A DNA stretch of 59,716 nucleotides, from the NCBI RefSeq assembly GCF_002113885.1, contig NW_018406583.1, forward strand, positions 11,103 through 70,818. Direction: 5' to 3'. The DNA comes from Mizuhopecten yessoensis. Its lineage: Eukaryota. Both the position numbers and the translations under genes were made by a program. Below, piece after piece: positions 21,801-48,355 of this stretch. Within the stretch, counting starts at the first letter, position 1. Each line of letters begins with the position of its first letter. Below the pieces are notes generated by a model. That model was not told the DNA's origin, did not search any database, and saw nothing but the letters and a program-made list of their open reading frames with translations.

Positions 21801-24480
21801 GTCTACAGTGGTGAAAGGGTTAAATTGAACACCTTTTTCCTATGATCATATATCAGGATACAGGATAAGTATCACAATACATTCCTTCTATATTGCAATA
21901 AATTATATACATAATGTACACTCCAGATATATAGCGACATCGATATGCCTACCATATACTGACGAACATGTCTACTTCAGAAGGCTGATTTTCTGATATA
22001 AAACAAGAAATTGTTTTTTGTCATAAACATTAAACCATGGCCCCATAATAGTTACTAATGAACATTATTTACTTACTTTTTGGAAGTTCATGGAGGGTCT
22101 GATCCTTGTAGATAAAGCGAGTATCTACTTCACTTCCCTTCAATGCAACGATGATATCCTTGTGCAAACCAAGCCGTAAAGCCTTGAAATAACAGAAGAT
22201 GATATATCTGCAGTTTGATTACAGATTGTCTTGGACCTTGCACTTTTTACTATTGTAAATTAAAAGATGTGTAATTTATTTAGATATCTTCCTGTGTTTA
22301 GTTTAATAAAAACATGTTGTCTTTTTCAACAAAGCAGGTACATATATACTACATAGGTGTCCCGCAAATCAGAATAAACATTTCAAATTGATTTTGGAAA
22401 TATGTCTGTTTTATATAACATGGCTATTTTTTCAGTATCAAGGGGTTGTAAACTTTGCATAAATACCACTACCGGAAATTTAAAAGAAACTGTTTTGTGA
22501 TAGAATGAAAAAACATTTTCAGAATTAGTTTATGCCCTTATGTAGTCCGAATTATTCTGGCGTTTTATCGACTTTTTTTTATATCGGTCAGACCGATATA
22601 AAAAAAGTTGATAAATGTCAGAATAATTCGGACTAGCCCTTAGGTAGCCGTTTTTTTATTACACTGCTGTAAACCGTCATGCTATTTAAGGATTGAAATG
22701 CATCTTTTAAACATCATTTAAGTTCTGTTAAGGCCAACCAAAAATATTTTGTGTTTCCGGTTACCCTACCTTCCCCAATTTCTTGTGCCTACCCTAAACT
22801 TTTAAGGCAATTTTCAAAGAAGCACTGTTAAGGTCTAGATCACTCTCCTATATAAACCATATACATTTATTTGTTAAAATAACATTTGTTACCTACCTAC
22901 CTACCCTACATTTTTCCAACATGTTACAGGAAACACATATATTTATTATGTCTGGCCCAAGACATATTTTCCAAAATGGGCTACCATGCATTATGGAATT
23001 TGTTAGAAATTTAAGGAACTGCATTGTATACAATCATAATAAATTGTTAAAAGATGAATTTCAATCTTTATATTTACATTCTAGATGAACAACAAAGACA
23101 AAATTATTTGAATCTATCTTTTTCTAGGTCTCATTTAGTTCAAAATACATTTGGAACATTATATTTTACCAATTTACCACTGAGCTACCTGGTCAAAGGA
23201 AGTGTTCTGGCCTACCTGTACCTCAGTTACATCTGAAGTAAAATAGGCGAGTTTACTGAATACAAAAAAAAACAGAGTGCTGTGGGACGGATCCTTAATG
23301 TTTTTCTCCTTAATTACCATGGAGTTATTCTATTAAAGGCAGAACGGAGTAGCATCAAATTAATATTAATCCAACATAGCCCATTTTGTATGCTGGCTTA
23401 CACATAGGTTTTGCAAACAAACATATAAATCCTTTTGATTAATTTTTTGCTTGACAAAATTAATTTCATATTTACTTACAAGATCCACTGAATTTACACT
23501 TGAGTTATTTGTTGTAGCACGAAAGCTCCGAGGACCATGCTCAAACACAGTATTGTCTTGAAATTTTGTTGAATGTAGCCAACCACCAAATCTATCAGAA
23601 GCTTCCAACAGGACCACCTAAAAATAAAACACATGAAAATACTTCTCATTGCTTTCCAATTAAAGGGACGTTACGGTGAAGCATATTTTTTTTTTCAAAT
23701 ACTTCATAAACATATCAAGTGAGTCTCCTCATGGAAAATAACGGTCAGTTTGGCTGTTTATATATTCATATAAATGAGTAATTTTAATATAAGTATCATG
23801 TTTTCTACCTGTCTGACCAACAATTTGCTGTGGGATTCCCCCTGTATAACAGCTACTAATGCCTGCACATATATAGCACGCCATTTTATTGTAAACAAAA
23901 TGACTGGCAGTGGGAAGTGTGGCTATGTTTCAAAATAAGTCAAGTGTTAGTTTTTGCTGTTTCAGAACTATTGCAATCAAATTAAAATATTACTGGGCAA
24001 TAGCAATGCGTTTCATCATATTACCACGGACTTAGATAACAAAACTAATATAATTCCGTGATATTACTGAATATTGCAGCCCGAGTTTCCTCTGGCCCTG
24101 ACACCAGACTTAGACATTTTGACAGATAGGTGCATAGGTGGTATAGGTGTCTAGCTGTCAAACTGTCTAAGTCTGGTGTCAGGGCGAGAAGAAACTCGGG
24201 CTATGAATATTGATCTCCTGCTAATACTAATGATATTGAAGCCAGAGGAAACCCGGGCTATATTTGCCGGTACCGGGGCCCGAGTTTCCTCTGGACCTGA
24301 CACCAGATTTAGACATTTGACATATAGAATGTAGATGTCTGGTGTGGGGCCGGTGCCCCAGTACATGTAGAAAAGCAATTTATTTACCTTAGAAAACTTT
24401 GAATGAGTTCCTTCTTGTAATGCGTAGAAGGCAGATGACAAACCACTTATTCCTCCTCCTAAAATCACTGCCTTTGCCAT
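12828..24480 (-). CDS. PPOX: Protoporphyrinogen oxidase (HemY/PPOX family), 11 coding exons, 489 aa
   Basis: Exons (minus): 24480-24388, 23617-23480, 22182-22077, 19887-19751, 18792-18657, 18251-18064, 17640-17580, 17090-16975, 15691-15572, 13535-13380, 13046-12828. All introns are GT-AG with consistent phases; total 1470 nt. Motifs: FAD-binding [94 protein letters not shown]. Confidence 0.97.
13594..13683. mobile_element. ~90-bp piggyBac-like MITE, family B
   Basis: TAACCCTTTCACC...GATGAAAGGGTTAA termini. Inverted copy at about 21732-21823 and a fragment at about 16010-16053. Confidence 0.7.
14356..15482 (-). mobile_element. HINE/Helentron-like element with internal tandem repeats, in a PPOX intron
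   Basis: AACAAG...GGTCCCC at one end and (GGAT)n/GGAC microsatellite plus TAGTCCCC...GGGGGACAA hairpin at the other. Internal ~150-bp repeats contain AAGGTCAAAGCATAGGTCA...CTCTGCACTCTGCC. Confidence 0.65.
14479..14602. mobile_element. Palindromic (fold-back) MITE TAGCCCGAGTTTCCTCT...AGAGGAAACTTGGACTA
   Basis: Long inverted arms; nested in the HINE-like element. Same family at 24078-24203 with partial copies to about 24350. Confidence 0.8.
17700..17871. mobile_element. hAT-like MITE fragment (terminus GAGAGTTGGCAAGTATG)
   Basis: Inverted homologue of the element at 25667-25901. Confidence 0.65.
20195..20488. repeat. Dispersed repeat shared with PSMD1 intron 1
   Basis: TTATCTTTCCCTTTTTATGTATC...GATTCAGACACACCTGTTA...GACCACAGGATGTAGATT is the reverse complement of about 52600-52780. 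Confidence 0.75.
21340..21670 (-). mobile_element. tRNA-derived SINE (family 1)
   Basis: Reverse-complement homologue of 37051-37400, with an (ATT)n tail. Confidence 0.8.
22543..22635. mobile_element. Near-perfect ~93-bp palindrome (TAGTC...GACTA)
   Basis: TAGTCCGAATTATTCTG...TATATCGGTC-A-GACCGATATA...CAGAATAATTCGGACTA. Confidence 0.8.
23660..23990. mobile_element. TTAA-associated (Kolobok-like) non-autonomous element
   Basis: TTAAAGGGACGTTACGGTGAAGCATATTTTT...CATATCAAGTGAGTCTCCT is homologous to the start of 31620-32149. The right boundary is approximate. Confidence 0.45.
24025..24060. mobile_element. 36-bp TIR-only remnant with 7-bp TSD (putative P-superfamily excision footprint)
   Basis: ATATTAC|CACGGACTTAGATAACA-AA-ACTAATATAATTCCGTG|ATATTAC. 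Confidence 0.75.
24078..24350. mobile_element. Palindromic MITE cluster in PPOX intron 1
   Basis: Full hairpin copy at 24078-24203 plus partial arms at 24241-24260 and 24277-24350; same family as 14479-14602. Confidence 0.8.
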
Positions 24481-24839
24481 AGTTTCAGCAGAAAGTTCTA
24501 TAGCACAATCGTACACATTTATATAACTTGCATCGTGGTGGAAAACTTACACACAACCAATTTTACCTCCGTCATTGAAGAGCTCAAACCAAAATTGGGT
24601 GCTGCTTGATTTGGCAACCGCGCACTCAAACGGCACACTAAGTTATATATTCATTGTGGGAACTTTCTAGTAATTTTAAGTAATTTCATTATTATTTAGG
24701 TTGTTTATAATGAATCTACATTCATGCAAGTGCGGAAGAAAATACTCGTACTGACGATGGCCATTGTGCCACAGGTACTTGCCTCGTCTGTCAGTACACC
24801 TATATACTATACATATTATGGATGTATTGGCAGACGAAT

Positions 24840-24920
24840 GCCAGTCGTTTCGGTAACATGTCATTTCGGGAGTCCCGAAGTCGTTTCGGGACTCAATCAA
24901 GTCGTTTCGGGACATATACA
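24840..24920. repeat. Short GTCGTTTCGG sub-repeats, probably a transposon subterminal region
   Basis: Four GTC(G/A)TTTCGG copies within about 75 bp. Confidence 0.5.
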
Positions 24921-25072
24921 ATTTTCACGTATAAATAACATTTCGCTCCCGTTTCATAAAAAGTCATGTAAATAAACAAGTATGGTTTTAGTCTATGACC
25001 TGTATCACGACCTACCTGTGCTTTGGACCACTGTATTGAATAACATTTTGTATATTGTCTTTTTAGTTTATT

Positions 25073-25094
25073 CACGGAATTAGATTAGTCCGTG
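25073..25094. mobile_element. 22-bp TIR-only remnant with 7-bp TSD (putative excision footprint)
   Basis: GTTTATT|CACGGAATTAGATTAGT-CCGTG|GTTTATT. Confidence 0.75.
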
Positions 25095-25666
25095 GTTTAT
25101 TAAATCTAATTTAACTATGAAAAACTTTTGTTAATAGGAGTATGTTGTTATGGACCTGAGCAAGTAATATTAACCGAGACGAAGTCAAAGTTAAGCCAAT
25201 TTTCGCAGGTTCATTTAACCACATATATATATATAAACCTCAACAAATGTCTATAATTGATAAATATTGTATGTGTACTATAACTATATTATGTTATTTG
25301 TATTAAATTGTATACCTTAATACTGTTATGTTTGACTTTCTTAACAGCTTTATCTTTGTCGAAATGCGAGGTTATTGTAAAATAACAGGTGTATACACAT
25401 CAAAAACTTCTCAAGTTGACTGTTTAATATATGTATATATATTTAAAGTGTGTGATCCGCATAAGTGATTAAATGTTATTTTTAGTGACGCGGTTCATGC
25501 CATTTTCCTGTAATGCAGTTGGCACCCACGCATATTGCCTATGAACCGCATCTCAAAGTAGTTGTGACCTTTCGTTAAAGGATAACGTTAGCGCAACATG
25601 TGTTTTTATGCTGAATCGAGTTGACCCTATTTTCAAGGATAACGTCAAATAAACTGAGTGAAGGGA

Positions 25667-25901
25667 ATGCTTGCCAACTCTCCCTATTTAGGAGGGAGAC
25701 TCCCGACTTTGGACCCTAAAATTAAGCATTTTCAACTAGTAAATTTGCTATACTATTCTTATCTTCTGATATCTATTGAGTTCATCTGAAAGAACAACTA
25801 AAAATATGTCATTTTAAAGGGTTATTTTGTCTCTGTGGGGAATATTTTGAGCGTGCAAAGTCTCCCTCCCCCGCGGAAATTTCAAGAAATTGGCAAGTAT
25901 A
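25667..25901. mobile_element. hAT-like MITE (ATGCTTGCCAA...TTGGCAAGTAT)
   Basis: Terminal inverted repeats; homologous to 17700-17871. Confidence 0.65.
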
Positions 25902-26138
25902 CTATGACAAGTCAGAAACTACAAACAGTGACGGGGTTTAACATATCTAGTGATACAACGGTGTAACAGGACTGGACTCTGCCTCTGTCCAAGTCCCATT
26001 GTCAACTCAGGTTCAATTTGGTTTCCCTCAGGTTCTTCTGTTTAATGCAGTACTCTTAACCCAAACACTTAATCCACGAGAATGCACAATTCCTCCACGT
26101 CATTAGCAGAAGACCGCTTAAAAGATTCCCTATTACAT

Positions 26139-26305
26139 AATAATAATAACAATAATAATAATAATAATAATAATTCGAGGTTCTTATATACCGTTTTATC
26201 ACAACCTAGTTCGTAGGTTGTCTCAAAGCAGTTCATAAACGTGCCGTGACTCGAACACGCAACCCGGCCTTCGTTCATGAGCACTAGACTACCGTGCCTC
26301 CTATA
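26139..26305 (-). mobile_element. Internally deleted tRNA-derived SINE (family 1) with (ATT)n tail
   Basis: tRNA-like head (reverse complement GGCACGGTAGTCTAGTG...GTTCGAGTCACGGCAC) joined directly to the 3' end shared with 37051-37400. Confidence 0.8.
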
Positions 26306-27340
26306 ACACATGCAGTCAACTGAACAGCGATAGCATAGAGTTGATTATTACTCGTTCCCGTTGGGTTAAACAGCCAGAGCTGTGTCCAAGTTAGAGTTAC
26401 AAACGTTCTCATTATATTCTAAAATGCATGTTCAGTAAATGTTGTATTGGTAATCTTCATAATTTACAATAATTAGACGTAGTATATGTTTTATCATTCT
26501 TCATTCTTTATTAAAACATACAGTATTCTATACTTGTATTTCATTACAGGAATAATATTCTTCAAAATAAAGATATAATTAGATCTATATATACTAATTG
26601 TGTTTTATTACACTAATTACCAAAATAATCCACGATCAATGAAGTAACAGAAGAAGCAACTCTGTATCATCCCGGTTTCAAAACCAGCCACAAGATTATA
26701 TATGTCACTGTGGAAATGTTGTCACATTTGCGATTGCTATATTTGAAGTCACTCGAGGTCATTGTCAAAGTACGTGCATCAAACATTGGTAAGCCCGTTC
26801 TTATGACATACCAATAAGGATCCCCCTACCTCTGCCCAAACTGTACATACCTGTTGTGAAAAAAATCTGGCATGACAATAGCTTTGATCAATCATTTCCG
26901 AACAGAAACCATAACTTGCGAGACTTTTATTGAAGGTGAAATACATAAAATATATCCAACAACGGTTTTCTGAGTGAAACACTGGAATTCAGATTATATA
27001 CTATCGCTCTTACCAATTGAGCTACCTAGTTTAAGGGGAGTGTTCGGGCCCGATTGTGTTAGTTATATTAAAATAGAAGTTAAAGGGGGTTACTGTACAA
27101 AAAAACACAGTGCACTGGGACATGGATCCTTAAGCGAGGTTTATCGCGTAGCAACCTTACGGTCTGTGGTCGGTGTCTGTTAAGACAACGTTACATCAGA
27201 TTTTTTTTTATAATTTCAAGTTGAGAACGTCAAATATTGGTATCTGCATGTCTACATGCTTTCTGACATGCACGGTTACGCCCCCTTGATGCCTGTCGCT
27301 TGCGAGCTTGGCTAACGCGGTCGCCTCTTCAAGCCTTGAC

Positions 27341-27370
27341 CACGGAATTAGATTGCTATCTAAGTCCGTG
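27341..27370. mobile_element. 30-bp TIR-only remnant with 7-bp TSD (putative excision footprint)
   Basis: CCTTGAC|CACGGAATTAGAT-TGCTATCTAAGTCCGTG|CCTTGAC. Confidence 0.75.
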
Positions 27371-27566
27371 CCTTGACCGAGCATTGAAGCAACTACAAAT
27401 TACAGACAAATTTGTATTAAAATGCGCGGGGCAATGGCCTTATAACAAAATAGATGGAAAAAAACGTAAATAAATTTTGAACAAAGGAAAATTAAAATAA
27501 CGGCCAGGTGGAAGCTGAAATCTATGCTTGGATGATATAGGTAAATTGTTGTTGGCGAAATTGGTC

Positions 27567-27987
27567 CGTGGTTGTGGACTTGTGGTAAATTGACTGTGGT
27601 TGTGGTAAATTGACTGTGGTTGTGGGTTGTGGACTTGTGGTAACTTGACTGTGGTTGTGGACTTGTGGTAACTTGACTGTGGTTGTGGACTTGTGGTAAA
27701 TTGACTGTGGCTGTGGACTTGTGGTAAATTGACTGTGGTTGTAGACTTGTGGTAACTTGACTGTGGTTGTGGACTTGTGGTAACTTGACTGTGGTTGTGG
27801 TAAATTGACTGTGGTTGTGGGCTTGTGGTAAATTGACTGTGGTTGTGGACTTGTGGTAAATTGACTGTGGCTGTGGACTTGGTTGTATAAAAGGTTGTAT
27901 AAAGTTTTGTGGTAAATTGTCAGTGGTTGTGGACTTGTGGTAAATTGACTGTGGTTGTGGACTTGTGGTAAATTGACTGTGGTTGTG
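27567..27987. repeat. 28-bp minisatellite (GTTGTGGACTTGTGGTAAATTGACTGTG)
   Basis: About 15 tandem units built from TGTGG sub-repeats. Explains ORF 27400-27996. Confidence 0.95.
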
Positions 27988-28327
27988 CTGCCACACGACG
28001 TGAAGGTGGACGGAGCTGCCTCACATTCGACCAGTAATCAAAACTAAGTAAAAGTAGAAATAAATAGAAAAAAAAGAGACATTTTACTTCATGATTAATG
28101 TTGATATGGTGATGATAATGAACATGAGTGAGGCCGAAACGGTCAAATCAACGGAAACATGATAGAGCTCAGCACGGCCTACAAGGCAAGAATGGTTTGT
28201 TGTCATATATATAAAGTTGCCCACAAAAGATTGAAAACTCGTCGCACGAATCCTTTCCAAGGAATTCCGCCTAATCAACCTAACGCGAGTCACGACATGA
28301 CAAGCAGATTTGAGTTTCATAGTCGTC

Positions 28328-28586
28328 TGGGGTTACGCTCACTTACGCTCTCTGTACTCCTGTGGGAATATGAAGGTACGAAGCTAGTTATTTGATTGGT
28401 CTCAGGTAAAGATACATATACCTATCCGTTGAAGATTACAAACGAGCGTTAGATGTACATGTCAAAGGATCAAACTGGCCTTCCTCGTCTCATCCATAAA
28501 GTAGCGCACACTGAGCTTTCGATTTTGTCATGACATATTAGGGGTGCAGAGAACGTAAGTGAGTGTGGCCCTTGAGTATCGAGGAT
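28328..28586. mobile_element. MITE family C (TIR CTCGATACTC..GGGTTA.GCTCACTT.CGCTCTCTG.ACCCC)
   Basis: Inverted arms GGGTTACGCTCACTTACGCTCTCTGTAC and GGGGTGCAGAGAACGTAAGTGAGTG...GAGTATCGAGGAT. Other copies at 40939-41293 and 42743-43019. Confidence 0.7.
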
Positions 28587-28861
28587 GAGATGTCGATCGC
28601 AAAACTTTGAGTCATATAATTGGCCATCGTAGGAAATAATGCACTTTTAATCAAACAATGAATATCGAACAACTCTTGTTTCTTCATTTTGTTGCTACCT
28701 CTGAAGATCGTGCAGTGCCCGATATACCAGTCTTTTGTCTTCTGTCCAACTAGGTCATGTAAATGGCGGGGAAACTACGTCACACGTGTCCCCGGCCTGA
28801 TGTATGATTGTACAATTACACCGTCTTATCTTTCACCAGGAAAATCTATCCGCACTTAAAT

Positions 28862-32500: not shown

Positions 32501-34739
32501 CTAAAACTCACAAGAAGATAACAGGAACATTACAACGCCTGTACAGTTATTAATTATACGTATATTCTATACATAACGATATTCATGCATGCTCAGCTAT
32601 ATACATTCGTGACTCCTAAAGTTTCTAGTGACTACCCCCGCGCCCTGTCAGACTTGTAGTAGGGCACGTTGTGTGAGAAAGTCTTTTTTACATAGCAATC
32701 ATGCTGCTGCATTTCTACGTTTGAGTCATATCACTGCTTTATGTATCATTATTTCGAATATTGATAACTTTTGAACATTCACGGGTGAAACAAACAAAAA
32801 TCAATTAAAATACGACGCAATGCTGCCGCTATCTGATTTAATACAATATACAAGTAACTGATAGTGTTACAACATATATATTTACCAGGAGCGTATTTAT
32901 AAACTCAATTTTAGTGATGGGACATAATTTATTTCATAACCTTTTATGGTGTATGATGTGACTTCAAATGAGTAAAAATACATCTATACTTTGCTGTTAA
33001 CATATATGATATATAATGTGTTTAGCAAATGTTCTATTTAAAACGTATTTACACCACAAACATACGCGTATATATTGATTAACATGATGGTTTACTGGCG
33101 TATTTCTAGCGTAACGCAGGAAATAGTTTCATGTTTCATGGACAATAAATGTTGTAATATAGTAAGGCAGGATTCAATTACTATTATCTGTACTCGAAAT
33201 CATATGCGGAAATATTGTCCTTTAGAACAAAATTTGATCGACAAACGTTTTAAGACATACTTTCTCATTCAAGTGTCAACTCTTTATATTATATTTACAT
33301 CTCGCACGTAAAAGCGAGTTCTATACCTTTAAAAGTTGACATTTCACAATTTTGTATACTGGCTTCCGTTTGAAATGTGTTCAGATTTGTTATTGGTTTG
33401 CCGGCATCTCTTTGTCACTATTTACAATAGAGAACACAAACAACACAAACAAGTAAGTCTAAACACTGTTTTTTATAACAAAACATTCCGATTTTGGTCG
33501 CATCTATAGACAATGTTTAGGTCTAAGCCAGGGAAATATGGGGCTCCCCAAAGGGTTAAGCAAATGTCCGACTATTCGGTTATTTATTTTGGTAACCGGT
33601 TCATGGTCTTCCGACCGAGTAGCCGGCTAGCCGTTCACAACCCTCATTTAACGAATGAACAATGACATGTCAAAGGTCTTTTGATAATGCAATCTATGTT
33701 TGATTAATCAAGAATTATCTAATGAAATACTATACCATACATTAATCACTATAAGAAAGCTCATTCACTTATGTGTGATCTAAATAATCATTACATAATC
33801 ATTCATTACTCATGAATTCATTAACCTCCTTATGTTTATGGTAATTCCAAGCACAGGTAAAATTTTATCTCTCATGAAAAAACCCTTAAAAAACCCACAT
33901 AAATCACTTAAAAACGTATCTTAGTACATCAATTTTGTTTTCTCATTTGCGAGAGGTACCTGTGTTTCAAGAGCTCAAATATCTATATGTCATGCTAAAT
34001 CAGTTATAAAATAGAAAAATATATGTTAAATTTCTCCAAAACAACGGAAATTATATAATATTAACAAACAATAATCAGCTAACATACTTACGACATAGTC
34101 CTGCCACAGTCGCGTGTATCTGTAAGATAATTCCAGACTAACACCTCACATCAGGCAAAGCAAACGTGACGTCAGTTTCATTACCAACGCGGTAATACCA
34201 TTTACATTTTCTTCTGTAATATAAATCAATTTAAAGTACATGCAAATGGAATTTGACGAATATGAATATTGCGTTAATGCTCGAGCCGACAGATACTATA
34301 GTAACCCTAGTCTGTTGCTGTCGATGAAATTACAGTTTCCGGTAACTGGCGGTTTTTTGTTTAGATCATTCTAACATCTGGATTAAAAATGTTTACGTTC
34401 TCTTTTCATCAGAAGAGTAATAGCTTGTGTCTGCAAACACCACTTTCGGTTTCAAAAGGTACACTTGTACCTGTGTGAACCATTTACAATCAGTATATAG
34501 ATCTTCCCACACAGCCGCTATCTCTGTGTGTACTCTACACATACGTATCTGTGTGTTAACTATCATCCTATGTACTCCAAACATATGTTAACACTTATAC
34601 ATAGTTGCCGGGAAACGTAACCTTTACTTGTGAATTTCAGAACTTGTGTTTCATTTAGCTAATCACTGATCTAACCTTTGATGATACTACGGAATTAGCT
34701 ATATCTAAGTCTGTGGTGATAGTGAAATATGGTATTTAT

Positions 34740-37050: not shown

Positions 37051-37400
37051 GCACGGTAGTCTAATGGTAGGACGCCGGGCTCGTGACCGAAGGGTTGTGG
37101 GTTCGAGTCACGGCACGGCACTGTGTTGTATCTTTGGGCAAGATACTGTACCCCGCTTGTTCCAGTCTACTCAGCTGTAACTGAGTACGTGGTTGAGCAG
37201 TGCTAGAACTGTTGAATGCTAGCTGTTAGCGCCGAAATGGCAGCTCCGGCTGTATGCTCCCCCAGGGAGTTGAGAAAGATATTGGCTGGTTGCAAAGGCC
37301 TTATAACCACGGAAAATAATTTCTGAACCGCTTTAAGACGACCTACGAACTAGGTTGTGATAAAGTGGTAAATAAGAACCTCGAGTTATTATTATTATTA
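37051..37400 (+). mobile_element. Full-length tRNA-derived SINE (family 1)
   Basis: A-box-like TAGTCTAATGG, B-box GGTTCGAGTCA, central CTTTGGGCAAGATACT...GGCTGTATGCTCCCCCAGGGAGTTGAG, (TTA)n tail. Three copies in the window. Confidence 0.85.
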
Positions 37401-38057
37401 CATGATATGCCTTCTTTGGTTTACCACAATTACCATTAAACGGTATTGGCCGATGAAGCGTTTACCTAGCGTAGTCGTATACAGTTGTGTTAAAAAGAAC
37501 AAGAGTTTAAAAGATCTAGCTAATAGGCTTTTTTAATCAATCATTAATGCAATTGTTGATTATTGAATTGTCACACAGTATATTACTGATAAATACAGTC
37601 ATATGGTAATCTAAAAACTGTCTACATTGTCCTGCCAATTCTGAGCCAATTTTGGCTTACGAGACACTATAGTCATTAAAATACAATTAACAATTACATT
37701 TACAAAAAGAGGACACCCTTATTGCATTACAATCTATTATCAGGATAAATGTTTTCTTCGTTTAAACAAAGAATAACAGGCAAGAAAGACGTAAATATAA
37801 AGATAGTCATAAGGATTATTTTTTTCATTTCAGTTATACACAGACGTCATTAAATACTTAATATATCAGTGTTAAAGGTAGATATGCCTAAACGAAAATT
37901 ATAAAGAAAATAAACATATGTTGCATAAGGCTTGACAGGTGCCACATATTGTCTAGATGAGCTTACTATTCCCGACTCTCCAGTCGTTTCTGTAGTGGTT
38001 TTAATCCCCAATTCCCGGTATTGTATTTTTGTATCAATTTTGAATCGGTTTTTGCCT

Positions 38058-39960
38058 TGTTGTTGACGCTGTGGTATATTTTGACCATGTGTGTTGACGC
38101 TGTAGTATATTTTGTCCATATTTGTTGACGCTGTGGTATATTTTGTCCATGTGTATTGACGCTGTGGAGTTTTTATCCATGTGTGTTGACGCTGTGGTAT
38201 ATTTTGTCCATATGTATTGACGCTGTGGTATATTTTGTCCATGTGTGTCAATGTTGTAGGTTTTTTTTGTCCATATGTGTTGACGCTGTGGTATATTTTG
38301 TCCCTGTGTGTTGACGCTGTACTATATATTTTGTCCATATTTGTTGACGCTGTGGTATATTTTGTCCATGTGTGTTGACGCTGTGGTATATTTTGTCCAT
38401 ATGTGTTGACGCTGTGGTATATTTTGTCCATGTGTGTTGACGCTGTAGTATATTTTGTCCATGTGTATTGACGCTGTGGAGTTTTATCCATGTGTGTTGA
38501 CGCTGTAGTATTTTTTGTCCATGTGTGTTGACGCCGTGGTATATTTTGTGCATATGTGTTGACGCTGTGGTATATTTTTTCCATATGTATTGACGCTGTG
38601 GTATATTTTGTCCATGTGTGTCGATGTTGTAGTATTTTTTGTCCATGTGTGTTGACGCCGTGGTATATTTTGTGCATATGTGTTGACGCTGTGGTATATT
38701 TTGTCCATATGTATTGACGCTGTGGTATATTTTGTCCCTGTGTGTTGACGCTGTAGTAGATTTTGTCCATATTTGTTGACGCTGTGTTATATTTTGTCCA
38801 TGTGTGTTGACGCTGTGGAGTTTTTTTATCCATGTGTGTTGACGCTGTGGTATATTTTGTCCATATGTATTGACGCTGTGGTATATTTTGTCCATGTGTG
38901 TTGACGCTGTAGTGTATTTTGTCCATGTGTGTCGATGTTGTAGTATATTTTGTCCATGTGTGTCGATGATGTTGTATGTTAATTAATGTGTGTTGACGCT
39001 GTGGTATATTTTGTGCATATGTGTTGACGCTGTGGTATATTTTGTCCATATTTGTTGACGCTGTGGTATATTTTGTCCATGTGTGTTGACGCTGTAGTAT
39101 ATTTTGTCCATGTGTGTCGATGTTGTAGTATATTTTGTCAATGTGTGTCGATGTTGTAGTATATTTTGTCCATGTGTGTCGATGTTGTTGTATGTTAATT
39201 AATGTGTGTTGACGCTGTGGTATATTTTGTGCATATGTGTTGACGCTGTGGTATATTTTGTCCATATTTGTTGACGCTGTGGTATATTTTGTCCATGTGT
39301 GTTGACGCTGTAGTATATTTTGTCCATGTGTGTCGATGTTGTAGTATATTTTGTCAATGTGTGTCGATGTTGTAGTATATTTTGTCCATGTGTGTCGATG
39401 TTGTGTACATTTTGTCAATGTGTGTCGATGTTGTAGTATATTTTGTCCATGTGTGTCGATGATGTGGTATAATTTTCCATGTATGTTGACGCCGTGTTGA
39501 CGCCGTGGAGTATTTTATCGATGTGTGTTTACGCTGTGGTATATATTGTCCATGTGCGTGACGCCGTGGGGTATTTTTTCCAGGGGTGATGACGCTGAGA
39601 GGTTTTCGTTCTTGAGGTTTGACACTGTGGTACTAAGTATATATCTATATTTCACTTTGCTTTTCAAATGTTTCAAATACTGTTTTCCTTTGAATTTCAA
39701 CATTTTTTCATGTGTCGATGATGTGGTATATTTTGTCCATGTGTGTCGATGTTGTAGTATATTCTGTCCATGTGTGTCGATGTTGTAGTATATTTTGTCC
39801 ATGTGTGTCGATGATGTGGTATATTTTTCCATGTATGTTGACGCCGTGTTGACGCCGTGGAGTATTTTATCGATGTGTGTTTACGCTGTGGTATATATTG
39901 TCCATGTGCGTGACGCCGTGGGGTATTTTTTCCAGGGGTGTTGACGCTGAGAGGTATTCG
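38058..39960. repeat. 31-bp minisatellite (GTTGACGCTGTGGTATATTTTGTCCATGTGT) with a ~352-bp duplication at its right end
   Basis: About 50 units. GTATGTTGACGCCGTGTTGACGCCGTGGAG occurs at 39481 and 39833, each followed by the same unique tail (to about 39710 and 40062). Confidence 0.97.
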
Positions 39961-40938
39961 TTCTTGAGGATTGACACTGTGGTACTAAGTTTTTTTTCTA
40001 TATTTCACTTTGCTTTTCAAATGTTTCAAATACTGTTTTCCTTTGAATTTCAACATTTCTTCATGCTAATTAGTAACCTTTTTAATAGTTGAACAAACGC
40101 AATAGTAGCAACGAATTGATGTTATGATGATTTCAATTTAAGTAGAAATAGCGATAAATTTTAAATCAAAAAGTCCAAAAACGATTACTTACAAGTCGAA
40201 CATTCTATAATTACAATCTCAAATACTAAAACTTTGTGGCAAATTGATACATAAGTACTTCATAAAGCTGCACAACAATTATAAATACGAATATATTTAT
40301 TTTCCTCGATATTGATAAAATATACATTGAGCCACAAACAAAACATTAAAGCATATGCTCACGAAAATACCCAGAAAAATTCTGCGCGAATCCAGTCATT
40401 CAGGGCAAATGTATTAAAATGGCTAATCATATTCACATTTATTACCTTTTCCATCGAAACGTATTGCTCTTCACGATATGTATACATTAGCGTATTCACT
40501 GCAACGACCACATGAAACTCTCTAATGAAAACATTTTATTGTATTATGTTGGAAAAAAGTCAAAGTTCCGGATAGCCAAAAAGCAGCATCAGATTAATGA
40601 AAACATAAACAAACAACTCCGGTCCAACAGGTCAAACAGTTTGGATAACGATGAACGGAAACGGCTCAACTGTCCGTACCGAGTTGAGAATTAGAAAAGT
40701 GCCAGTCAATTCCTGCATGGTTTTACCAATAATATATGAAACATATACAGCGGCGTAACTAGTCCTTGTTCGGAGTGGAATCATTTAGGAGCGGGTCTAG
40801 GGCAGGGCCTTACTATGGAGACAAGGGGGTGCAACAAGCAGTTTTGCTTCATTTTTTCTTCTCTTTGAAAATTTAGTACTAAAGTACATTAATTTGCGTA
40901 CCAGCGTATATGCAGTTAAACGTCTGATAAACCACTTT

Positions 40939-41293
40939 CTCGATACTCCAGAGTTTAGCTCACTTTCGCTCTCTGCACCCCTTAAATATGGTATTACAAA
41001 AATGAAGGCACGCAGCTAGTTGTTTGATTGATTTCGGGTAAAATAAAACCTGACCTATCAAGCAGCGGATACGTGTCCTTTCAATATTAGAGAGGAGCTA
41101 TAACCGACTTCAAAGCCGGTCAATTTTAGCGTTAGGCACAGGGAGATTTCTTTTGGTGTTCATCAAAAAATCAAACTAGTCCTTCTGTCCCATCCCCAAG
41201 GTGGTGCACACTAAGCCCTCGATTTTGCTATGGCATACTCAAGGGGTGTAGCGAACGTAAGTTAGCTCAAGCCCTGGAGTACGTATCGAGGAT
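40939..41293. mobile_element. MITE family C
   Basis: TCTCGATACTCCAGAGTTTAGCTCACTTTCGCTCTCTGCACCCC at the left and GGGGTGTAGCGAACGTAAGTTAGCTC...GTATCGAGGAT at the right. Confidence 0.7.
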
Positions 41294-41335
41294 AGGAATA
41301 CCATGATCTGTTATATAGGTATCAAATAGATGTAT

Positions 41336-43459
41336 CTAGGACAGACGCCATCCTGAGAACATTGCCTTGCCATAAACACTACTACTATGTATGATTCCAC
41401 TAAATTTAGACCGGATAAACACGTGATCTCCTACACTGACTGACGTCACAATCACACCGGTGGTACTATCCCAAGCATGCCCTGTTTCCGCATCAGAGAA
41501 TATGGAACCCTGGGACAACCCGTTAATGACAAGTTCCGTCACAACGTTGTCTGTCGTGGTTCCAGTGGTCAGCCAGGTGAATACGTACACCCCACTGACC
41601 GGAACTGTGTATACACCATCTCCTGCATGATAGTGATCATCCATGTCCAGTAGGACTTCATCGAATGCTATCACTAGATTGGGATGTAAATTCAAATCTC
41701 TTCCACTCAAAGAAACGCTGAATGCTCCTGCTCCATTAGGCGCAACTCTGACTGCAATAACAAAACAAAAACAGTTTATTAAGCGATTGTTATATATGCC
41801 GTAATATGTTGTGACTCCCTTTAAACCACATTGTAGGTTTATGCTTACTTTCCTGGAATATGTCATAGCAAAATCGAAATCTCAGTGTGCACCACCTTGT
41901 GGGTGGGACAGAAGAACTTGTTTGATCCTTTGATGTACATCAATAATAAATTATTGATGGGCAGCTAATATTTTGGATAATAAAATAATGTGAATGTAAA
42001 AATATAAATAAATTAATGTATGCTATAGTATAATGTGGTGTTGTAGCTTACCAGATCGTGAGGGCTGTTCATCCTTACACTTCCTTAATGGTTTCGTTTT
42101 AGATGTTGCGTTGATGCCATCTTTGGGATTCTCTTCAGGCCAATTGGAATCGGAGACACGGTCGGGAAACTCAGTGAGACGTTTGTCCGTCCAATCTTGG
42201 GATTGTTTTGATACTGATTTCAGCTCTCGCTCCAGCTGGTCAATACGGATTTCTTTTCGCTTCAGATCCTCCTCGTTGCTCCTGACCGTCATCTCCAGCA
42301 GCTGTAACCTGTTGTCCTGACGTTCTATCCTTTCCAATAACGATTCCACCAGACGTCTAAGCGATTCCTCTGTGGACACTTCTCTGCAACGATTATTCAT
42401 TACGATTCGTTCACTTCATCCAGAGAATATGTTATAGCAAAATCGAAGGCTAAGTGTTTGCCACCTTATGAATGAGACAAGAAGACTAGTTTGATATTTT
42501 GGTGTACATCAAAAACATATCGTGACATTGACTAGATTTGAAGACAGGTGTCGCTCCTCTCTAATCTAATCAAAGGATAGCTATCAATGGGCGCAGCGAG
42601 TGTAAGCGAGAGTCATCCCGAGAATTTCGAGGATATACGATCTGTGACACGCCTAAGCGGCTTATGACTGTTATTAAATACTAAAATGAGACATAAAGGC
42701 ATATCAGCAACTTGCTTTATAGAAATTTTTAGCAACACCCGACCTCGATACTCCCGGGGTTAAGCTCACTTTCGCTCTCTGTACCCCTGTAATATGTCAT
42801 AGCAAAATTGAAGGGTTAGATGCACCCTCTTGTGGATGACTTTGAAGTCGGGTGACGCTTCTCTGTAAATCTTCAAAGATATAATCATCCTAAGGGATCG
42901 GATTTTTTTTTTTTACCCAAGACCAATGAAATAGCTTGCCGCGTGCCTTCGTTTTTGCTATAACATATTCCATGGGCACAGAGTGCTAAAGTGAGCGTAA
43001 CCCCTGGAGAATCGCGGATGAGAAATATCAAGCATATATGGAACTTATCATATTCCTCATTGGCTTTTTTATGACAGTAACCTACACGTAACTTTTTAGA
43101 AATTCATGTCATCAATTAATCAGACGTTTGATGACAATGTTCTGCAATAAGGTTTAGACGTTTTAAAAGCTCACCTACTCATGATATCTTGCCATGAAAC
43201 TATACTTACTCTTTGTGTGTCTCTTGAAATAACTTGGGTGTAGTTGTTATTTTTGTGTACATGAATTGCATTTAGTATTACTATATATTTTTACTGTTGT
43301 TCTAACTAAGTTTTGTATGGAATACACCAGCATATCTTACCTATGGTCAATGTTCACGTCAGATGGACTAACGTCCGGGCGAGAATTTTCGGTCGGACTC
43401 TCCTTAGCCGTGCCATGGACCACAAAACTCAGGACGAGGGCGAGACGCAGCCAGTACAT
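41336..43459 (-). CDS. Secreted C1q-domain-containing protein (signal peptide, coiled coil, gC1q), paralogue A, 288 aa
   Basis: Exons 43459-43341 (MYWLRLALVLSFVVHGTAKE...), 42383-42052 (heptad-rich LRRLVESLLERIERQDNRLQLLE), 41751-41336 (AFSVSLS...FDEVLLD...GVYTVPVSGVYVFTW...VSVGDHVFIR...MFSGWRL). Intron phases 2 and 1; 867 nt. Confidence 0.93.
42743..43019. mobile_element. MITE family C in intron 1 of C1qDC-A (further fragments at about 41850-41940 and 42400-42635)
   Basis: CCTCGATACTCCCGGGGTTAAGCTCACTTTCGCTCTCTGTACCCC at the left and GGGCACAGAGTGCTAAAGTGAGCGTAACCCCTGGAGAATCGCGGAT at the right. Confidence 0.75.
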
Positions 43460-43545
43460 TATGTACTACAGAAGTGTCGATAACGGGCCGATTTATTTAT
43501 CAATTACTTTGAAATTATTGCCTTTAGAAACAATCTAGCACTGAG

Positions 43546-43556
43546 CTGATAAGAAA
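43546..43556. promoter_or_regulatory. GATA motif CTGATAAGAAA upstream of C1qDC-A
   Basis: The same 11-mer is at 47002-47012, upstream of C1qDC-B. Confidence 0.45.
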
Positions 43557-45033
43557 CGGTGGTCTGGACGTCACGAGTCTGGTTCGTTGATAGTTGACCG
43601 TACTAACACATGGCAACGATTGTAGTAAATATAGTACCGTACACGTATAAAAGGTCATTTACGCAAGCTTAAATTTTCGCGATTCTGACCCTCAGTTAGA
43701 AAATTACACGGATTACAATTTCGCGGTCTAGACAGGAACTAAATTTTCGCGATGTTTTAGCAAAGCATTACAGTAAGAATGTGGAATTTGTTAATCAAAT
43801 CTTCAACCAAACTAAAAGATGAGCGATACAACCTATTTTCAAACATCTTGCATTACTTTTGATGTATATGGTTTGCTACAACCACATCCTCGTTATTTCA
43901 TGACGACATAACGGTTACGAAATTGATTATTGCGTCTCATGTTTACGCTTGTCATTTTATTCTGCGGATCATATATATGTTCGCAATCACGTTGTCGTTA
44001 TCAACCCTCGAAATCGCGAAAATATCATCCCTGTGGAAATATTTCGCTATACGGTGGTTAATCATTTTCACCAAAAACCTTGCTTGTGTACCATATAAAA
44101 TAAAGATAAAAGTGTTTTTTTATTGCTTCGGATTTTGATAAAAGGACCTTGTATACTATTTATGTCTTTTTTAATGCCTTTGTACTTTTGGATTATTCTG
44201 ACTTCAAATAATATGTGGAGCATAAGTCGCTACAACTACTTGGTGCAGGATGAGTTGTCATTAAATATGTATATATGAGAATAACATTATCATCTAAATA
44301 TTGTATTTATTGAAAACAAGTTCAAAACTCGCGCAGTTGAGCCACGAAGTAAGGCAACACTTTTGCGATAAAGAAAACCAAATAAAATAATGGAAATGCT
44401 AGTCTTGTTAATTGTTTGATGCCAATCAAACGTTCCATTTCAAATACTTTATAAAAGAAATAATCCCTATATATCACCATCGCATAAGAAATCAAAGACA
44501 ACCTTTTTTTCATCAGATAGAACAGATGCCGTATGAACTTAAAAGTGGCACCATGGCGCGCGCTGATTCTAGAACACTTTACCCATTATCTGTTGCCAAA
44601 ATAATTAAGACATACGTTTTTTCCGTCTTCCTGTTATGAGTGCAAATGGTGGAAACTATCTAGGACAAAAACAATTATTTATTGTGCCATCTATCTAAGA
44701 GTTCTGTGATAGAAGTAGGACCGTTATGGCTAACTCCTTAATTGAATGGACATTTATCGAAGCGTACATTGATATAAGAAAAGTTAATTTTATAGAACGA
44801 ACAGTTAACTATGCGTTATTTCGAAAAACATCATATGTTACATGATTTTTTTCAATTGGGTTGTATTTGTGATATTGTGGAAATACCATAGTTTACAGGT
44901 ACATTTAGGTTTGGTAAAATTATAAATGTATCACCCTTGTCACAGACAATGTATTTTTGTAGATATGTCTATACAATTAAACTTTTATGAAATACAAACT
45001 CTATTCATTATACAACAATTACAAAACAAATTA

Positions 45034-45225
45034 TTTCTAGTTATATTAATTACTCTTGTTGGCCCGGATGTTAGCGCGCGGATGATTTCCATGTGGAAGG
45101 AAACCGGAGTTCCCGGAGAAAACCAACGTGATCGGGCAGGTCACCCAAAACCTTCTCACGTCCGATCTGGGAATCGAAACCCGGCCGCCTTGGTGAAAGG
45201 CGAGTGCGCTATCCACTGCGCCAAA
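45034..45225 (-). mobile_element. tRNA-derived V-type SINE (family 2)
   Basis: Minus strand reads TGGCGCAGTGGATAGCGCACTCGCCTTTCACCAAGGCGGCCGGGTTTCGATTCCC followed by V-domain-like GGTTTTCTCCGGGAACTCCGGTTTCCTTCCAC. Second copy at 58404-58601. Confidence 0.8.
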
Positions 45226-45427
45226 TGGAAATCAACATTTATTAACCTGATACTTGTATATATGTTCTTGTAAAATTAGGAAATAAAGAAATAAAAATAT
45301 CAACATTGCATTTAACAGAGAAAGTGATATTTCTATTATTTTAAGGAGAAATATAACAGGAAGGAATTGCATTTCTGAACCTATATCCTCTCAGAAATAC
45401 CATATATCTCGACTAGTGCTACTGCAT

Positions 45428-46939
45428 CTACGATAATCGCCATCCCGAGAACATCGCATTGCTGTAGATGTTGTCACTGTGTAAGTTGCCTGAGTATTTA
45501 GACCTGATAAACACGTGATCTCCAACACTGGCTGACGTCACAATCAAACCGGTGCTACTATCCCAATGAGCGGCATCCGGGTCAGAAAAAATTCTACCCC
45601 GCGGTGAGCCGTTAATTACCAGCTCTGTAACAACGTTAGCTGTTGATTCTCCTGTCGTAATCCAGGTGAATACATACACACCGCTAACCGGAACAATGTA
45701 TACTCCATCTGCCTTGTTGTAGTTACCTCCGATGTCCAGGAGAACTTCGTCAAACGTCAAAACAAAATTAGGATGTAAATCCTGATTCTTGCTTAAGGAA
45801 ACGCTAAAGGCTCCAACTTCTCCGGAGTTAGCTGGTGACACCCTAGCTGTAATTATAAAATAAGAAGTTTATTGCGTATCACGAGTTTAACTAGGAACAT
45901 ACATCTTCTGTGTAAATCTGTTATCGTGGATTCTTTAAATATTTTACTTATTTAATATGTTCAGCGAAGTGTCAATTGACTTATGCAATAGTGACCGGCC
46001 GGATGACTGAACATGATTCACACACCATACAATCGAGACCATTGAAGGTCATGTTGTCACTCACCGGACCTTCGAGGTTGCTCATCTTTTGTTTTCTGTC
46101 TAGATGTGATACCATTGATTTTACTCTTGGTCTGTTCTAGGGGTGAATCGGGATTGATGTCGTGGTCTTGAGCCTCGGACTGCTGACGTTCATCCACAGG
46201 AGGCTGGATTTGATATGACGCTGTTTTTATTTCATCAAGTTCTCGTTCCAGATGACCTATTCGGATGTCCTTACGCTTCAAATCCTCTATGTTTTCCTCG
46301 ATAGTCTTCTCCATCTGTTGTAGTCTTATCTCCTGAAGTTCGACCCGCTCCATCAAAGATTCCACAAAGTGTCTCAGCGGCGCGTTCGATGACGCTGTCC
46401 TACAACAAACACTTGTCATAATGCAGTACAACAATTCCATTGCAAATGCTAGGGCTTCATGTAAAGATGTATGTAACCGAATTGCGTTCATACCGGCATG
46501 AATATTGAAAAATGCCGTTTAATCCCTTAATTTACATTCAAACCTGATCAAAGTTTCTCTGTCACCTCCGAGAAGAGGGTTTTCTGTCATCCCTATGGTA
46601 ATACATATACTCTATTTCCTTCACATCGGTGAGAGGGAATGATCATCCCCGTGGTGAGTGTATACCAAAGAAATTTCATCACTTGGGGTTAGATTTTTGA
46701 GTATCTTAATTGTGCGGCTTGAAGCAAGCCTCGGGTAAGACATTCAAGAATATCACCACTCGGATTAAGATTTCTCTGTCATACCTTCACGGTCTTCACG
46801 ATTAAGGGCGTTAAATTTACCTGTCGCCATTTCTCACATCGGCTTGGCTGGTGTACGTCCCTGCCTTTTCTACCGGACTCTCCTCCGCAGTACCACGGGT
46901 CGCTAAAGTCAGGACGAAGACGAAATACAACCAATCCAT
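45428..46939 (-). CDS. Secreted C1q-domain-containing protein (signal peptide, coiled coil, gC1q), paralogue B, 290 aa
   Basis: Exons 46939-46821 (MDWLYFVFVLTLATRGTAEE...), 46399-46065, 45846-45428 (AFSVSLSKNQDL...GVYIVPVSGVYVFTW...MFSGWRLS). Same phases and exon-1 length (119 nt) as paralogue A; 873 nt. Confidence 0.93.
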
Positions 46940-47001
46940 TCTACACGTTGGTCGTTGACAACTTTGTCGAATTTCAAAAACGATCTACATGTAGCCCCAC
47001 A

Positions 47002-47012
47002 CTGATAAGAAA
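47002..47012. promoter_or_regulatory. GATA motif CTGATAAGAAA upstream of C1qDC-B
   Basis: Shared with the paralogue A upstream region. Confidence 0.45.
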
Positions 47013-47718
47013 TCGCCCACGTGGTTCCTTATAGGGACTGTAGATATGATGTTCTACACTTCCTCATTGTTTATCAAGGTTTCAACCTTCTCGTTACAGT
47101 TAGACTTAAAAGAAGACGGCAGCCCAGTGAGACAACTACGGAAAAAAAAAGGCGGGAGGGAAAAGAACTGATATAAATCTTAGTGGTGTTCCGATTAGTC
47201 GACTAAGTCGAGCATCGGTCAGTTAGGCTAAGTAACTGATAAATCGAGTACAAAATCCATGATCGATTTTAGTCGGAATGCTAATGTGTAGATATTATGG
47301 AGTTTTCAGTAGATATTTTCCCATCTACTATGTAAACTTGATGGCATCATCACTGCATGACTTACTTTTAGCGCATAGCTGCTAATTAGGACTATTTATT
47401 ACAGATTCGGTGTTGGAAGAGAGGTATTTTTTATATCATAATTTCATGGTATCACTTTTTTATTTGCCTAAGTGACTCGCAACAACAGCATGGAGGATTT
47501 CACTATGTATTTTTATAAAACTATTAGTAATCGACCATCGGTTGGTAAATGGTAAACAATGATCGATCATAAAATTTTAACCGATAACCAACATTAATAT
47601 ATCATATAAGTGTGGCGATGGGGACAGCAAATCAGTTTTTACATCCCCAATGTCCTATAAGCTGGAATCAAAAGAAAACCCCCGATTCTGCAGTGAGCAG
47701 TAAACATTAGTCACCTGA

Positions 47719-47902
47719 TATTCCGTCTTTTCGTATTGCAGATTTATCTGATCTTGTGAGTAGGTATTGTGACGTTATCATTTTGTGTGAGAAAATTACG
47801 TCTTTTTCCCAAAAAATGATGACGTTACTCTCACAAACAAATGACATAACAATCAATACATGGTTTCAAGAGCAGATAACTCTGCAATACGAAAAGACGG
47901 AA
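47719..47902. mobile_element. Palindromic MITE (TATTCCGTCTTTTCGTATTGCAG...CTGCAATACGAAAAGACGGAA)
   Basis: Long TIRs. A second copy at 49982-50505 is interrupted by an insertion. Confidence 0.8.
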
Positions 47903-48324
47903 CTATACACTTTCCTGAAACTGCACGTTCCCCTAAGCAACTTTTTAAGGTAAACATACGCGTGATATTGCCAGCATTCAACAACTGTTTTTTTTTTTAT
48001 ATATAAACATCCGGATAATCTTTGCTGGTGTAAATCATTGCGTTTTCAAACCAAAAAGAAAAACTTTCCAATGAAAATATTTAATTTTGAATAATGATTG
48101 AAAATCAATCCTCAATTAATTGAATTAATTATATGGTAAATCACTTAAGAGTGCTACTAGTATAAAGAATATAATTTACTTAAGGAAAACGATATTTCCT
48201 TAATCATAAATAATTTCGAAATATTTTTTGTTCAAACTTTATTTACATTGATTATGAAATTACTTTTATAACTTAAATGCTTTTTAGGACTTTAGATTTT
48301 TTAAATAAAAACCCCAATCATAAC

Positions 48325-48355
48325 CATGGAATTAAAATAGATATTTAAGTCCGTG
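48325..48355. mobile_element. 31-bp TIR-only remnant with near-perfect 7-bp TSD (putative excision footprint)
   Basis: TCATAAC|CATGGAATTAAAATAGATATTTAAGTCCGTG|TCATTAC. Confidence 0.6.

Follow-up and report, generated by a model that had tools for sequence, protein, structure and literature searches.

Excision of Tc1/mariner and hAT transposons leaves 2–3 nt of the element at the donor site, or only altered flanks. Galileo and its relatives make target duplications of 7 bp. A 17-nt staggered cut, which produces 17-nt 3' extensions, is described as peculiar to the P transposase (PMC7776569 and PMC10983969), and in these two papers it is mapped biochemically only for the fly enzyme. The fly P element has as its target a 14-bp palindromic motif (PMC2577343), and zebrafish Pdre2 has 13-bp terminal inverted repeats (TIRs) and 8-bp duplications (PMC7776569 and PMC10983969). 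Here we analyze a stretch of 59,716 nucleotides from the scallop Mizuhopecten yessoensis (contig NW_018406583.1, positions 11,103 to 70,818 of the forward strand; hereafter the window), in which a first-pass annotation had noticed four elements of 22–36 bp that start CA(C/T)GGA, end TCCGTG and are flanked by 7-bp direct repeats, and had read them as germline excision scars of a P-like family. As described below, units of this kind are very probably end-joined donor-site scars of a cut-and-paste transposon of the P (P element/THAP9) superfamily, which we call the CACGGA family.

Remnants limited to 17 nt of each transposon end

The four elements and their duplications were all located where the first-pass annotation had placed them, and a search of the window for CA[CT]GGA..TCC[AG]TG units of 12–60 bp with a 7-bp flank repeat (at most one mismatch) returned exactly these as its sole short units (scars 1 to 4 in Table 1). 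The expectation that many more would exist genome-wide was borne out. In the assembly (988 Mb, 82,659 contigs), the exact 13-mer CACGGAMTTAGAT was found 5608 times, compared with 49 for its reversed control, and the pattern CACGGAMTTAG-N(0-40)-TCCGTG (at most 57 bp, both strands) produced 4086 matches, compared with none for the control. Scaling from the 61 distinct loci in 100 listed rows, around 2,500 scar loci are present genome-wide. These 61 loci, 52 of them taken with flanks of 100 bp per side, and the four of the window constitute the sample of 65 units used below; L030 and L031, both within the 61, have common flanks and represent a later duplicate.

Nearly every remnant in the sample consists of one stub from each of two ends, named A and B, whose parental sequences were taken from long copies (A, CACGGAATTAGATTAGA.., and B, CACGGACTTAGATAACA..). 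The A end reads CACGGAATTAGATTAGAGGGAAAGGCAAC.. and the B end CACGGACTTAGATAACAGGGATTGGCAAC.., with a variant ..ATAGCA... The A stub is not longer than 17 nt in 62 of the 65 units, with 18 units at 15 nt, 11 at 16 and 13 at 17, none at 18 and three at 19. Similarly, the B stub does not exceed 17 nt in 64 units (12 at 15 nt, 11 at 16 and 14 at 17), the sole exception being L045, where 20 nt were kept as read by eye. A pattern for scars with all 17 nt of A gave 422 matches against none for the control. In a manual tally of 100 such scars listed, the parental G at position 18, which is present in the eight long-copy A ends read, was found in 16, many of them explicable by a G derived from B, while GG was found in eight and GGG in four, and position 21 was reached by none (the parent sequence past A17 reads ..AGAGGGAAAGG). 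The retained-end limit is thus 17 nt, exceeded by only a few scars and up to 20 nt, in line with the cap near 17 nt that the annotation had predicted.

The two stubs are joined in different ways, with an overlap of 1–3 nt in 34 of the 65 junctions, a blunt join in seven and a filler of 1–12 nt in 24. Both copies of the duplication are kept, and between them there are only terminal bases of the element, with microhomology or filler. The commonest form is a 27-mer, found as an identical string in nine of the 65 units and by length in 13, which arises as a join at a TTA common to both stubs; the recurrent forms are joined at the microhomologies TTA, G, T and GAT.

The 7-bp repeat that flanks the units was perfect in 34 of the 61 loci, with one mismatch in 13, two in seven and three or more in seven, where shuffled pairing of flanks predicts 0.65 perfect repeats, 0.85 with one mismatch and 4.03 with two. 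Overall, 54 of the 61 loci had at most two mismatches, against around 5.5 expected. The 8th flank base agrees in 15 of 61 loci, which is the chance level, so the duplication is exactly 7 bp long, within the 7–8 bp that are characteristic of the P superfamily. From the 51 sites with at most one mismatch, we derived a symmetrised target profile, T-nn-[GTnnnAC]-nn-A, a 13-bp palindrome that covers the duplication plus 3 bp per side, with an information content of 0.45–0.65 bit at six positions and below 0.1 elsewhere. Without symmetrisation, 15 of the 51 sites start with GT and 25 end with AC.

Uninterrupted paralogues and nested scars show that the unit together with one of the 7-mers is an insertion. 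The repeat downstream of the transposase gene at locus L018 (see below) contains GTAATAG just once, and at this place its L001 paralogue shows TAAATAG[23-bp scar]GTTATAG. Likewise, L021 has a paralogue of the left flank of the L018 element that is not interrupted. In addition, two scars (C2573:389066 and C5380:587853) sit within a scar of the common 27-mer type, each with its own 7-bp duplication, so older scars were hit again. In these two loci, L078 (G000:C2573:388966-389226) and L079 (G000:C5380:587753-588012), a 27-mer or 25-mer remnant interrupts the older one, and the duplications are GATAATC and ATAACAC.

Regarding the composition of the scars in the window, the decomposition proposed by the annotation was correct for scar 3, which has 13–14 nt of A and 17 nt of B (of the ..ATAGCA variant) with an overlap of 1 nt, and had to be amended for two others. 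Scar 1 is formed by 17 nt of B, 3 nt of filler and 16 nt of A with one substitution, instead of 17+2+17, and scar 2 by 16 nt of A plus TCCGTG, instead of 17+5, base 17 of the A end being A and not T. The 22-mer of scar 2 was also found at two further sampled loci, L054 and L068. Scar 4 contains an A-like end, CATGGAATTA (10 nt of A), followed by 7 nt of filler and 14 nt of B with a substitution. A fifth, decayed scar has flanks (ATGATAC/GTGATAG) that differ at two of seven positions, and at a possible lone B-end stub neither a partner end nor a duplication was recognised. Three CA..TG units of 14–45 bp with inverted ends and a perfect 7-bp flank repeat were detected in the window by a generic scan, which gave none in each of 30 shuffles, and CACGGAMTTAGAT with up to two mismatches matched the window 10 times, against 2.19 expected, a number reached in none of 100 shuffles. 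The window search for CA[CT]GGA..TCC[AG]TG units had also proposed a long pairing, 23318-48355, which was discarded as a chance match of a CATGGA to the end of scar 4, and no long copy of the CACGGA family was found in the window.

The presence of these scars among individuals was also studied. For this, contigs from four runs, belonging to four studies, were compared with positions 23000-28500 of the window. Scar 2 with both duplications was spanned by contigs in the four runs, scar 3 was covered in the four runs to within 3 nt of its end (contigs reach 27367), and scar 1 was covered in one run (X5), by a contig over 23884-24060, among the pieces listed. At scars 2 and 3 only the scar allele was observed among the joints listed. 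Being found in four of four sequenced individuals, scars 2 and 3 look old and fixed.

The scars are also clustered, in such a way that nine of the 61 listed loci have a neighbour at 5 kb or less, against 1.5 expected (binomial p 2e-5), and 10 of them at 10 kb or less, against 3.0 expected. In the window there are three exact-pattern scars in 24.3 kb, against 0.06 expected. This clustering fits local reinsertion or hot spots.

Scars are also found in small tandem arrays (G000:C4496:388077-389587, L085 at G000:C4021:523374-523726, G000:C4918:143349-143825, and L084), with a unit of around 36, 40 or 52 bp that comprises one scar and one 7-bp duplication or short flank, and the direct repeats of the scars seem to seed satellites. 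Besides, a second scar family, CAGGGACAGTAT..GTCCCTG, produced 473 matches against one for the control, spanning 21–41 bp among the matches listed (the pattern had a ceiling of 43 bp). Two of its members are nested within CACGGA scars and have 7-bp duplications of their own (GATTAGG and CAATGGA; Table 1). Since this second family also makes 7-bp duplications, the scar phenomenon is not confined to one family.

Long elements and their link to a P-type transposase gene

Longer elements sharing these termini, on which the excision reading of the annotation depended, do exist. Five elements of 3.4–6.3 kb, bounded by A and B ends and flanked by a 7-bp repeat, were read (Table 1), four of them belonging to 15 convergent A-B pairs, 1.4–11 kb apart, that were read from the listed A and B ends, and the fifth being L001. 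Genome-wide, at least 109 candidates exist for the initial 300 bp on the A side, of which 40 were scored with 71–82% identity, and at least 103 for the B side, of which 40 were scored with 83–92% identity. The TIR of these elements is imperfect, around 29 nt long with 24 of 29 positions identical by manual reading. No open reading frame (ORF) with a meaningful Pfam match was found in L021, L087, L088 or L089, and none of the five long elements encodes a transposase; a fragment of L001 looks retrotransposon-like by eye.

The true B subterminal sequence was taken from L021, and two other B-end queries were rejected. That from L001 (1980-2279) matched an unrelated high-copy repeat from position 78–92 or so onwards, and that from L019 (1882-2181) contained just 14 nt of the B end followed by a young 215-bp repeat, which has at least 170 candidates with 94–96% identity. 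Locus L019 itself (G000:C76712:97500-101000) has an A end with ACATTAC as its left flank and, 1.27 kb further on, the 14-nt B stub with GTAATGT as its left flank. As these two flanks are reverse complements, the locus looks like an inversion or hybrid-end event.

In order to relate the termini to an enzyme, we considered the 25 genome matches of Pfam PF21787. One of them, at L018 (contig C2226), lies around 2.5–2.9 kb downstream of an A end and in the same orientation. The gene is frameshifted and comprises two ORFs, which match the TNP-like RNaseH_N domain PF21787 (E 6.8e-13 and 2.3e-8) and the GTP-binding insertion PF21788 (E 1.2e-21), so that both the RNase H-like core and the GTP-binding insertion domain are present. 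In the PDB the gene has one match only, 6p5a (E 4.1e-9), which is the P transposase of Drosophila. The first 40 nt of the L018 A end are identical to those of L087 and L088, so that the A terminus is common to the coding copy and to non-autonomous copies. Collinearity between L018 and the non-autonomous copies extends over element positions 1–1632 and resumes over 2813–2931, at the start of the gene. The stretch between 1632 and 2813 holds an unrelated repeat, which is also present in the window at 22783-22960.

The 116-bp segment at 2813–2931 occupies the same place in the close gene copies L018, L022 and L023, where it lies at the 5' edge, and in four of the five long elements. Only 40 matches to it exist in the 988 Mb, of which 25 lie 15 kb or less from a listed A or B end, and three lie at the 5' edge in the closest transposase copies, with the one in C2226 counted also among the 25. 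Because of the collinearity and this common segment, the non-autonomous elements appear to derive from an L018-like P-type element by internal deletion, and the link between the termini and the transposase is supported by collinear homology of the sequences, not by an intact two-ended autonomous copy. The similarity of L018 to long copies ranges from 95% (L089, over 1 kb) to 77% (L021), so the CACGGA family was active for a prolonged period.

Scallops and mussels provide the closest named proteins, in agreement with the mollusc host assumed in the annotation: Mizuhopecten yessoensis (70% identity) and Ylistrum balloti (59%; 927 aa, full-length), as well as Pecten maximus, Argopecten irradians and, under the name THAP9, several entries from Mytilus. 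In the full-length bivalve homologues, PF21787, PF21788 and PF21789 (RNaseH_N, GTP-binding and RNaseH_C) are present. These bivalve P-type transposases have 890–950 aa, and their N-terminal 450 residues or so give no Pfam THAP match. In L018, the ORF at 3432-5216 begins with 21-aa tandem repeats, and a satellite with 46-bp units starts around 320 bp after the transposase ORF, occupying L018 6251-6879 and L086 287-2900 (G000:C2226), more than 6 kb in all with N runs.

No CACGGA termini were found around L022–L025, four relatives of the L018 gene, in stretches of 10 kb, nor were termini found in 12 PF21787 loci of around 3.4 kb each (L006–L017), where an occurrence of CATGGAATTA at one of them proved unrelated. 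The locus read as L006 and L024 (G000:C5526:66000-75999) has an uninterrupted P-type transposase frame of 1077 aa, 52% identical to the L018 protein, and no CACGGA termini in the 10 kb read, which includes N runs; this transposase may belong to another family.

Table 1. Positions, flanking duplications and extent of the features described in the text (scars and lone stub, window positions; L021, positions within the locus)
Feature	Position	Strand	Flanking 7-mers	Remnant or element
Scar 1	24018..24067	(-), A-to-B orientation	ATATTAC, at 24018-24024 and 24061-24067	36 bp, 24025-24060
Scar 2	25066..25101	(+)	GTTTATT, duplicated	22 bp, 25073-25094
Scar 3	27334..27377	(+)	CCTTGAC, duplicated	30 bp, 27341-27370
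Scar 4	48318..48362	(+)	TCATAAC/TCATTAC, one mismatch	31 bp, 48325-48355
Scar 5, decayed	34681..34722	(+)		28 bp, 34688-34715, TACGG..TCTGTG
Possible lone B-end remnant, uncertain	50712..50730	(+)		CACGGACTTA-TA-GATAACA
Long element L021	547-4412		GTTCAAT, perfect
Long element L089			CTAATAC, perfect	3398 bp
Long element L087			CTTTTCC/CTATTCC, one mismatch	5436 bp
Long element L088			offset by one base	6288 bp
Long element L001			TTTATAT/TTTATGT, one mismatch	4211 bp
Second-family nested case L080	G000:C5243:279993-280259
Second-family nested case L081	G000:C210:1208967-1209240

As for the rest of the window, high-copy repeats were detected at 24078-24330, 25576-25943 and 26128-26311, with contig word depths from thousands to 85,000 against around 10–20 in neighbouring bins; the edge of the first one sits 18 bp from scar 1. 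On the plus strand, TCC[AG]TG occurs 55 times and its reverse complement CA[CT]GGA 21 times, a strand asymmetry. A Pfam search with 10 ORFs of the window gave a C1q domain at 41339-41866 (-) (E 2.8e-16) and only two weak matches more; a 522-aa ORF at 37853-39418 (-) has a weak TelA match.

Origin of the remnants

We propose that the remnants were generated by excision and repair. A parent element with slightly different ends (A, CACGGAATTAGATTAGAGGG.., and B, CACGGACTTAGATAACAGGG..) would insert with a 7-bp target duplication, in such a way that each scar would once have held a full element. On excision, the transposase would cleave at the boundary of the element on the 3' strand and around 17 nt inside on the 5' strand, and each donor flank would be left with a 17-nt 3' overhang of element sequence. 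End joining in the germ line would then seal these overhangs, mostly through 1–3 nt of microhomology and in some cases with a few filler bases, yielding a product in which the two copies of the duplication enclose at most 17 nt of A followed by at most 17 nt of B. This is the simplest account of the features observed, and overhangs of 17 nt that are then joined are what has been described for the P element of the fly (PMC7776569 and PMC10983969). The chemistry of this cleavage is deduced, and so is the 17-nt staggered cut, from the scars; in this sense, the data support the proposal of the annotation that the cut is conserved in molluscs. The limit, the junctions, the long relatives and the homology to a P-type gene all sustain its identification of the units as germline excision scars of a P-like family, which we hold with high confidence.

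Several observations weigh against this interpretation. Among the scars, a few retain 19–20 nt of an end, and around 15 of the 100 listed scars read A17 + T + B17, where the extra T is not explained by either parental end. The loci were sampled through exact end motifs, which biases them to young, intact scars, and no occupied or empty allele, and hence no direct case of an element turning into a scar, was found in the four individuals among the 15 of 125 joints listed, in contigs that drop rare variants. Concerning the enzyme, the annotation had envisaged a full-length parent encoding a THAP/P transposase, of which the P-type part is supported, as the sole coding relative is of this type. An intact autonomous copy in which both ends flank the gene was not found. 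The far side of L018 enters the 46-bp-unit satellite and N runs, where the B end is not seen, and the stretch beyond the N run (L086) contains more satellite, then N, and no B end. Of the other close transposase copies, L022 and L023 are without recognisable termini, and none of the 15 A-B pairs is on a contig with an RNaseH_N match. Finally, Pfam detected no THAP domain (E up to 0.01) in the 595-aa ORF of L018, nor in the three full-length bivalve homologues examined (P0001, P0003 and P0005); a diverged or unmodelled domain, or a missing 5' exon, is conceivable.

The scars could instead be self-mobilising MITEs (miniature transposable elements with inverted repeats), that is, TIR-only units of 19–39 bp moved by the transposase of the family, with the 27-, 31- and 35-mers as amplified founders. 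Every unit indeed has TIR-like ends and a 7-bp duplication, and some forms recur, namely the 27-mer and, among the listed scars in which the full 17 nt of A are retained, the 29-mer and the 35-mer. However, the 65 units comprise 49 distinct sequences and 20 lengths (19–39 bp), as opposed to the homogeneity expected of a founder-amplified MITE and to the uniform length that would have contradicted the annotation, and no dominant founder with derivatives appears among them. The recurrent forms are microhomology joins, as repeated repair would yield, and no length goes beyond 17+17 plus filler, a limit not expected from amplification. Moreover, in the 53 of 65 units below 34 bp, no duplex to move would be left by two staggered cuts of 17 nt, and mobility of the fly P element requires 138 bp and 216 bp of its ends (PMC1562414). 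We consider this explanation highly improbable. Also very unlikely is a partial version of it, in which some of the recurrent 27-, 29-, 31- and 35-bp forms are TIR-only "nano-MITEs" that are still bound, cut and reinserted by a P-type transposase; if it were true, they would be the smallest transposable units known, and the number of units would record amplification plus excision.

A different possibility is that the units are true excision scars made by a non-P enzyme, the proximity of the A end to the L018 gene and the 116-bp segment being due to nesting or capture. It would account for the lack of a copy with both ends around the gene, for the long elements read without transposase, and for the THAP domain not being found. 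On the other hand, the 116-bp segment is specific to the family and keeps its place in the three close gene copies and in four of the five long elements, and the combination of a 7-bp duplication, a palindromic target that extends 3 bp beyond it and a 17-nt overhang is a signature of P (PMC7776569). No other transposase domain was found in the elements, and nothing positive supports a non-P enzyme, to which we assign a very small probability.

Internal deletion of resident copies, through replication slippage or aborted gap repair and with no defined staggered cut, would be another source of such units, and microhomology at the junctions fits slippage as well. There are also rare long retained ends, as in C3209:493379, with around 47 nt of A, and similarly in C3494:216001 and C5334:25361. 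Breakpoints of this origin should, however, spread over 3–6 kb, whereas the pattern CACGGAMTTAG-N(41-70)-TCCGTG (58–87 bp) gave only 143 matches against one for the control, to be compared with the 4086 of up to 57 bp. Among the matches listed, this longer class contains mostly pairs of adjacent scars, nested scars or small tandem arrays, the three loci just mentioned being the true longer derivatives, and the 61 distinct loci of the shorter class span 19–39 bp although the pattern permitted 57. Both ends pile up at 15–17 nt and then stop, and a filler between two full 17-nt ends fits end joining and not slippage. We judge internal deletion extremely improbable. Circle-junction reinsertion and TIR-TIR recombination were ruled out, as the termini face outwards beside the duplications in the former case, and inverted repeats would invert rather than delete in the latter.

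Scallop scars compared with known systems

We compared the end-joined scars of the scallop with the donor-site repair products of the Drosophila melanogaster P element, and both keep the two TIR termini, with up to 17 nt per end, between intact duplications. The homologous transposase core is a further likeness, as are the palindromic target reaching 3 bp past the duplication on each side (PMC2577343) and the local clustering of the scars, reminiscent of the "local hopping" described for the P element (PMC7776569). They differ in the duplication, of 7 bp in the scallop and 8 bp in the fly, in the termini, which in the scallop are CACGGA.. with two distinguishable ends, in the bivalve host, and apparently in the THAP domain, which Pfam does not detect in this lineage. 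Furthermore, the scallop scars are thousands of fixed germ-line fossils, whereas the fly products are laboratory events. That thousands of fixed scars are limited to 17 nt implies that the cut has the same geometry in a P lineage of lophotrochozoans, pointing to an old property that the superfamily has conserved.

With Galileo, 1360/Hoppel and THAP9/Pdre the scallop family has in common a P-type RNase H core with a GTP-binding insertion, and no account of natural scar populations for any of them was found in the open-access literature. The TIRs of Galileo are very long and of the fold-back type, unlike the imperfect ones of the scallop, of around 29 nt. Regarding the P-MITEs of Anopheles gambiae (PMC1562414), the non-autonomous scallop copies of 1.4–6.3 kb resemble them in keeping the parental ends and the duplication length, but P-MITEs keep up to around 100 bp per end with an unrelated core and form homogeneous families, in contrast with the short units of the scallop, which have up to 17 nt per end and are heterogeneous. 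In genome annotation, the latter should be labelled as scars, and not as MITEs or palindromic regulatory motifs.

No published account of genome-wide P-type scars or of the CACGGA family was found in the open-access literature. The 2,500 scars or so contrast with roughly 100–200 surviving long copies, and they constitute a natural catalogue of the junctions produced by double-strand-break repair in the mollusc germ line, including microhomology, filler and a recurrent extra T. Like the footprints of Tc1/mariner and hAT transposons, they are end-joined donor sites that retain the duplication. Unlike those footprints, which are not recognisable genome-wide, P-type scars can be searched for through their 17-nt overhangs, and because these overhangs leave recognisable remnants, the scars represent a searchable ledger of germ-line excisions.

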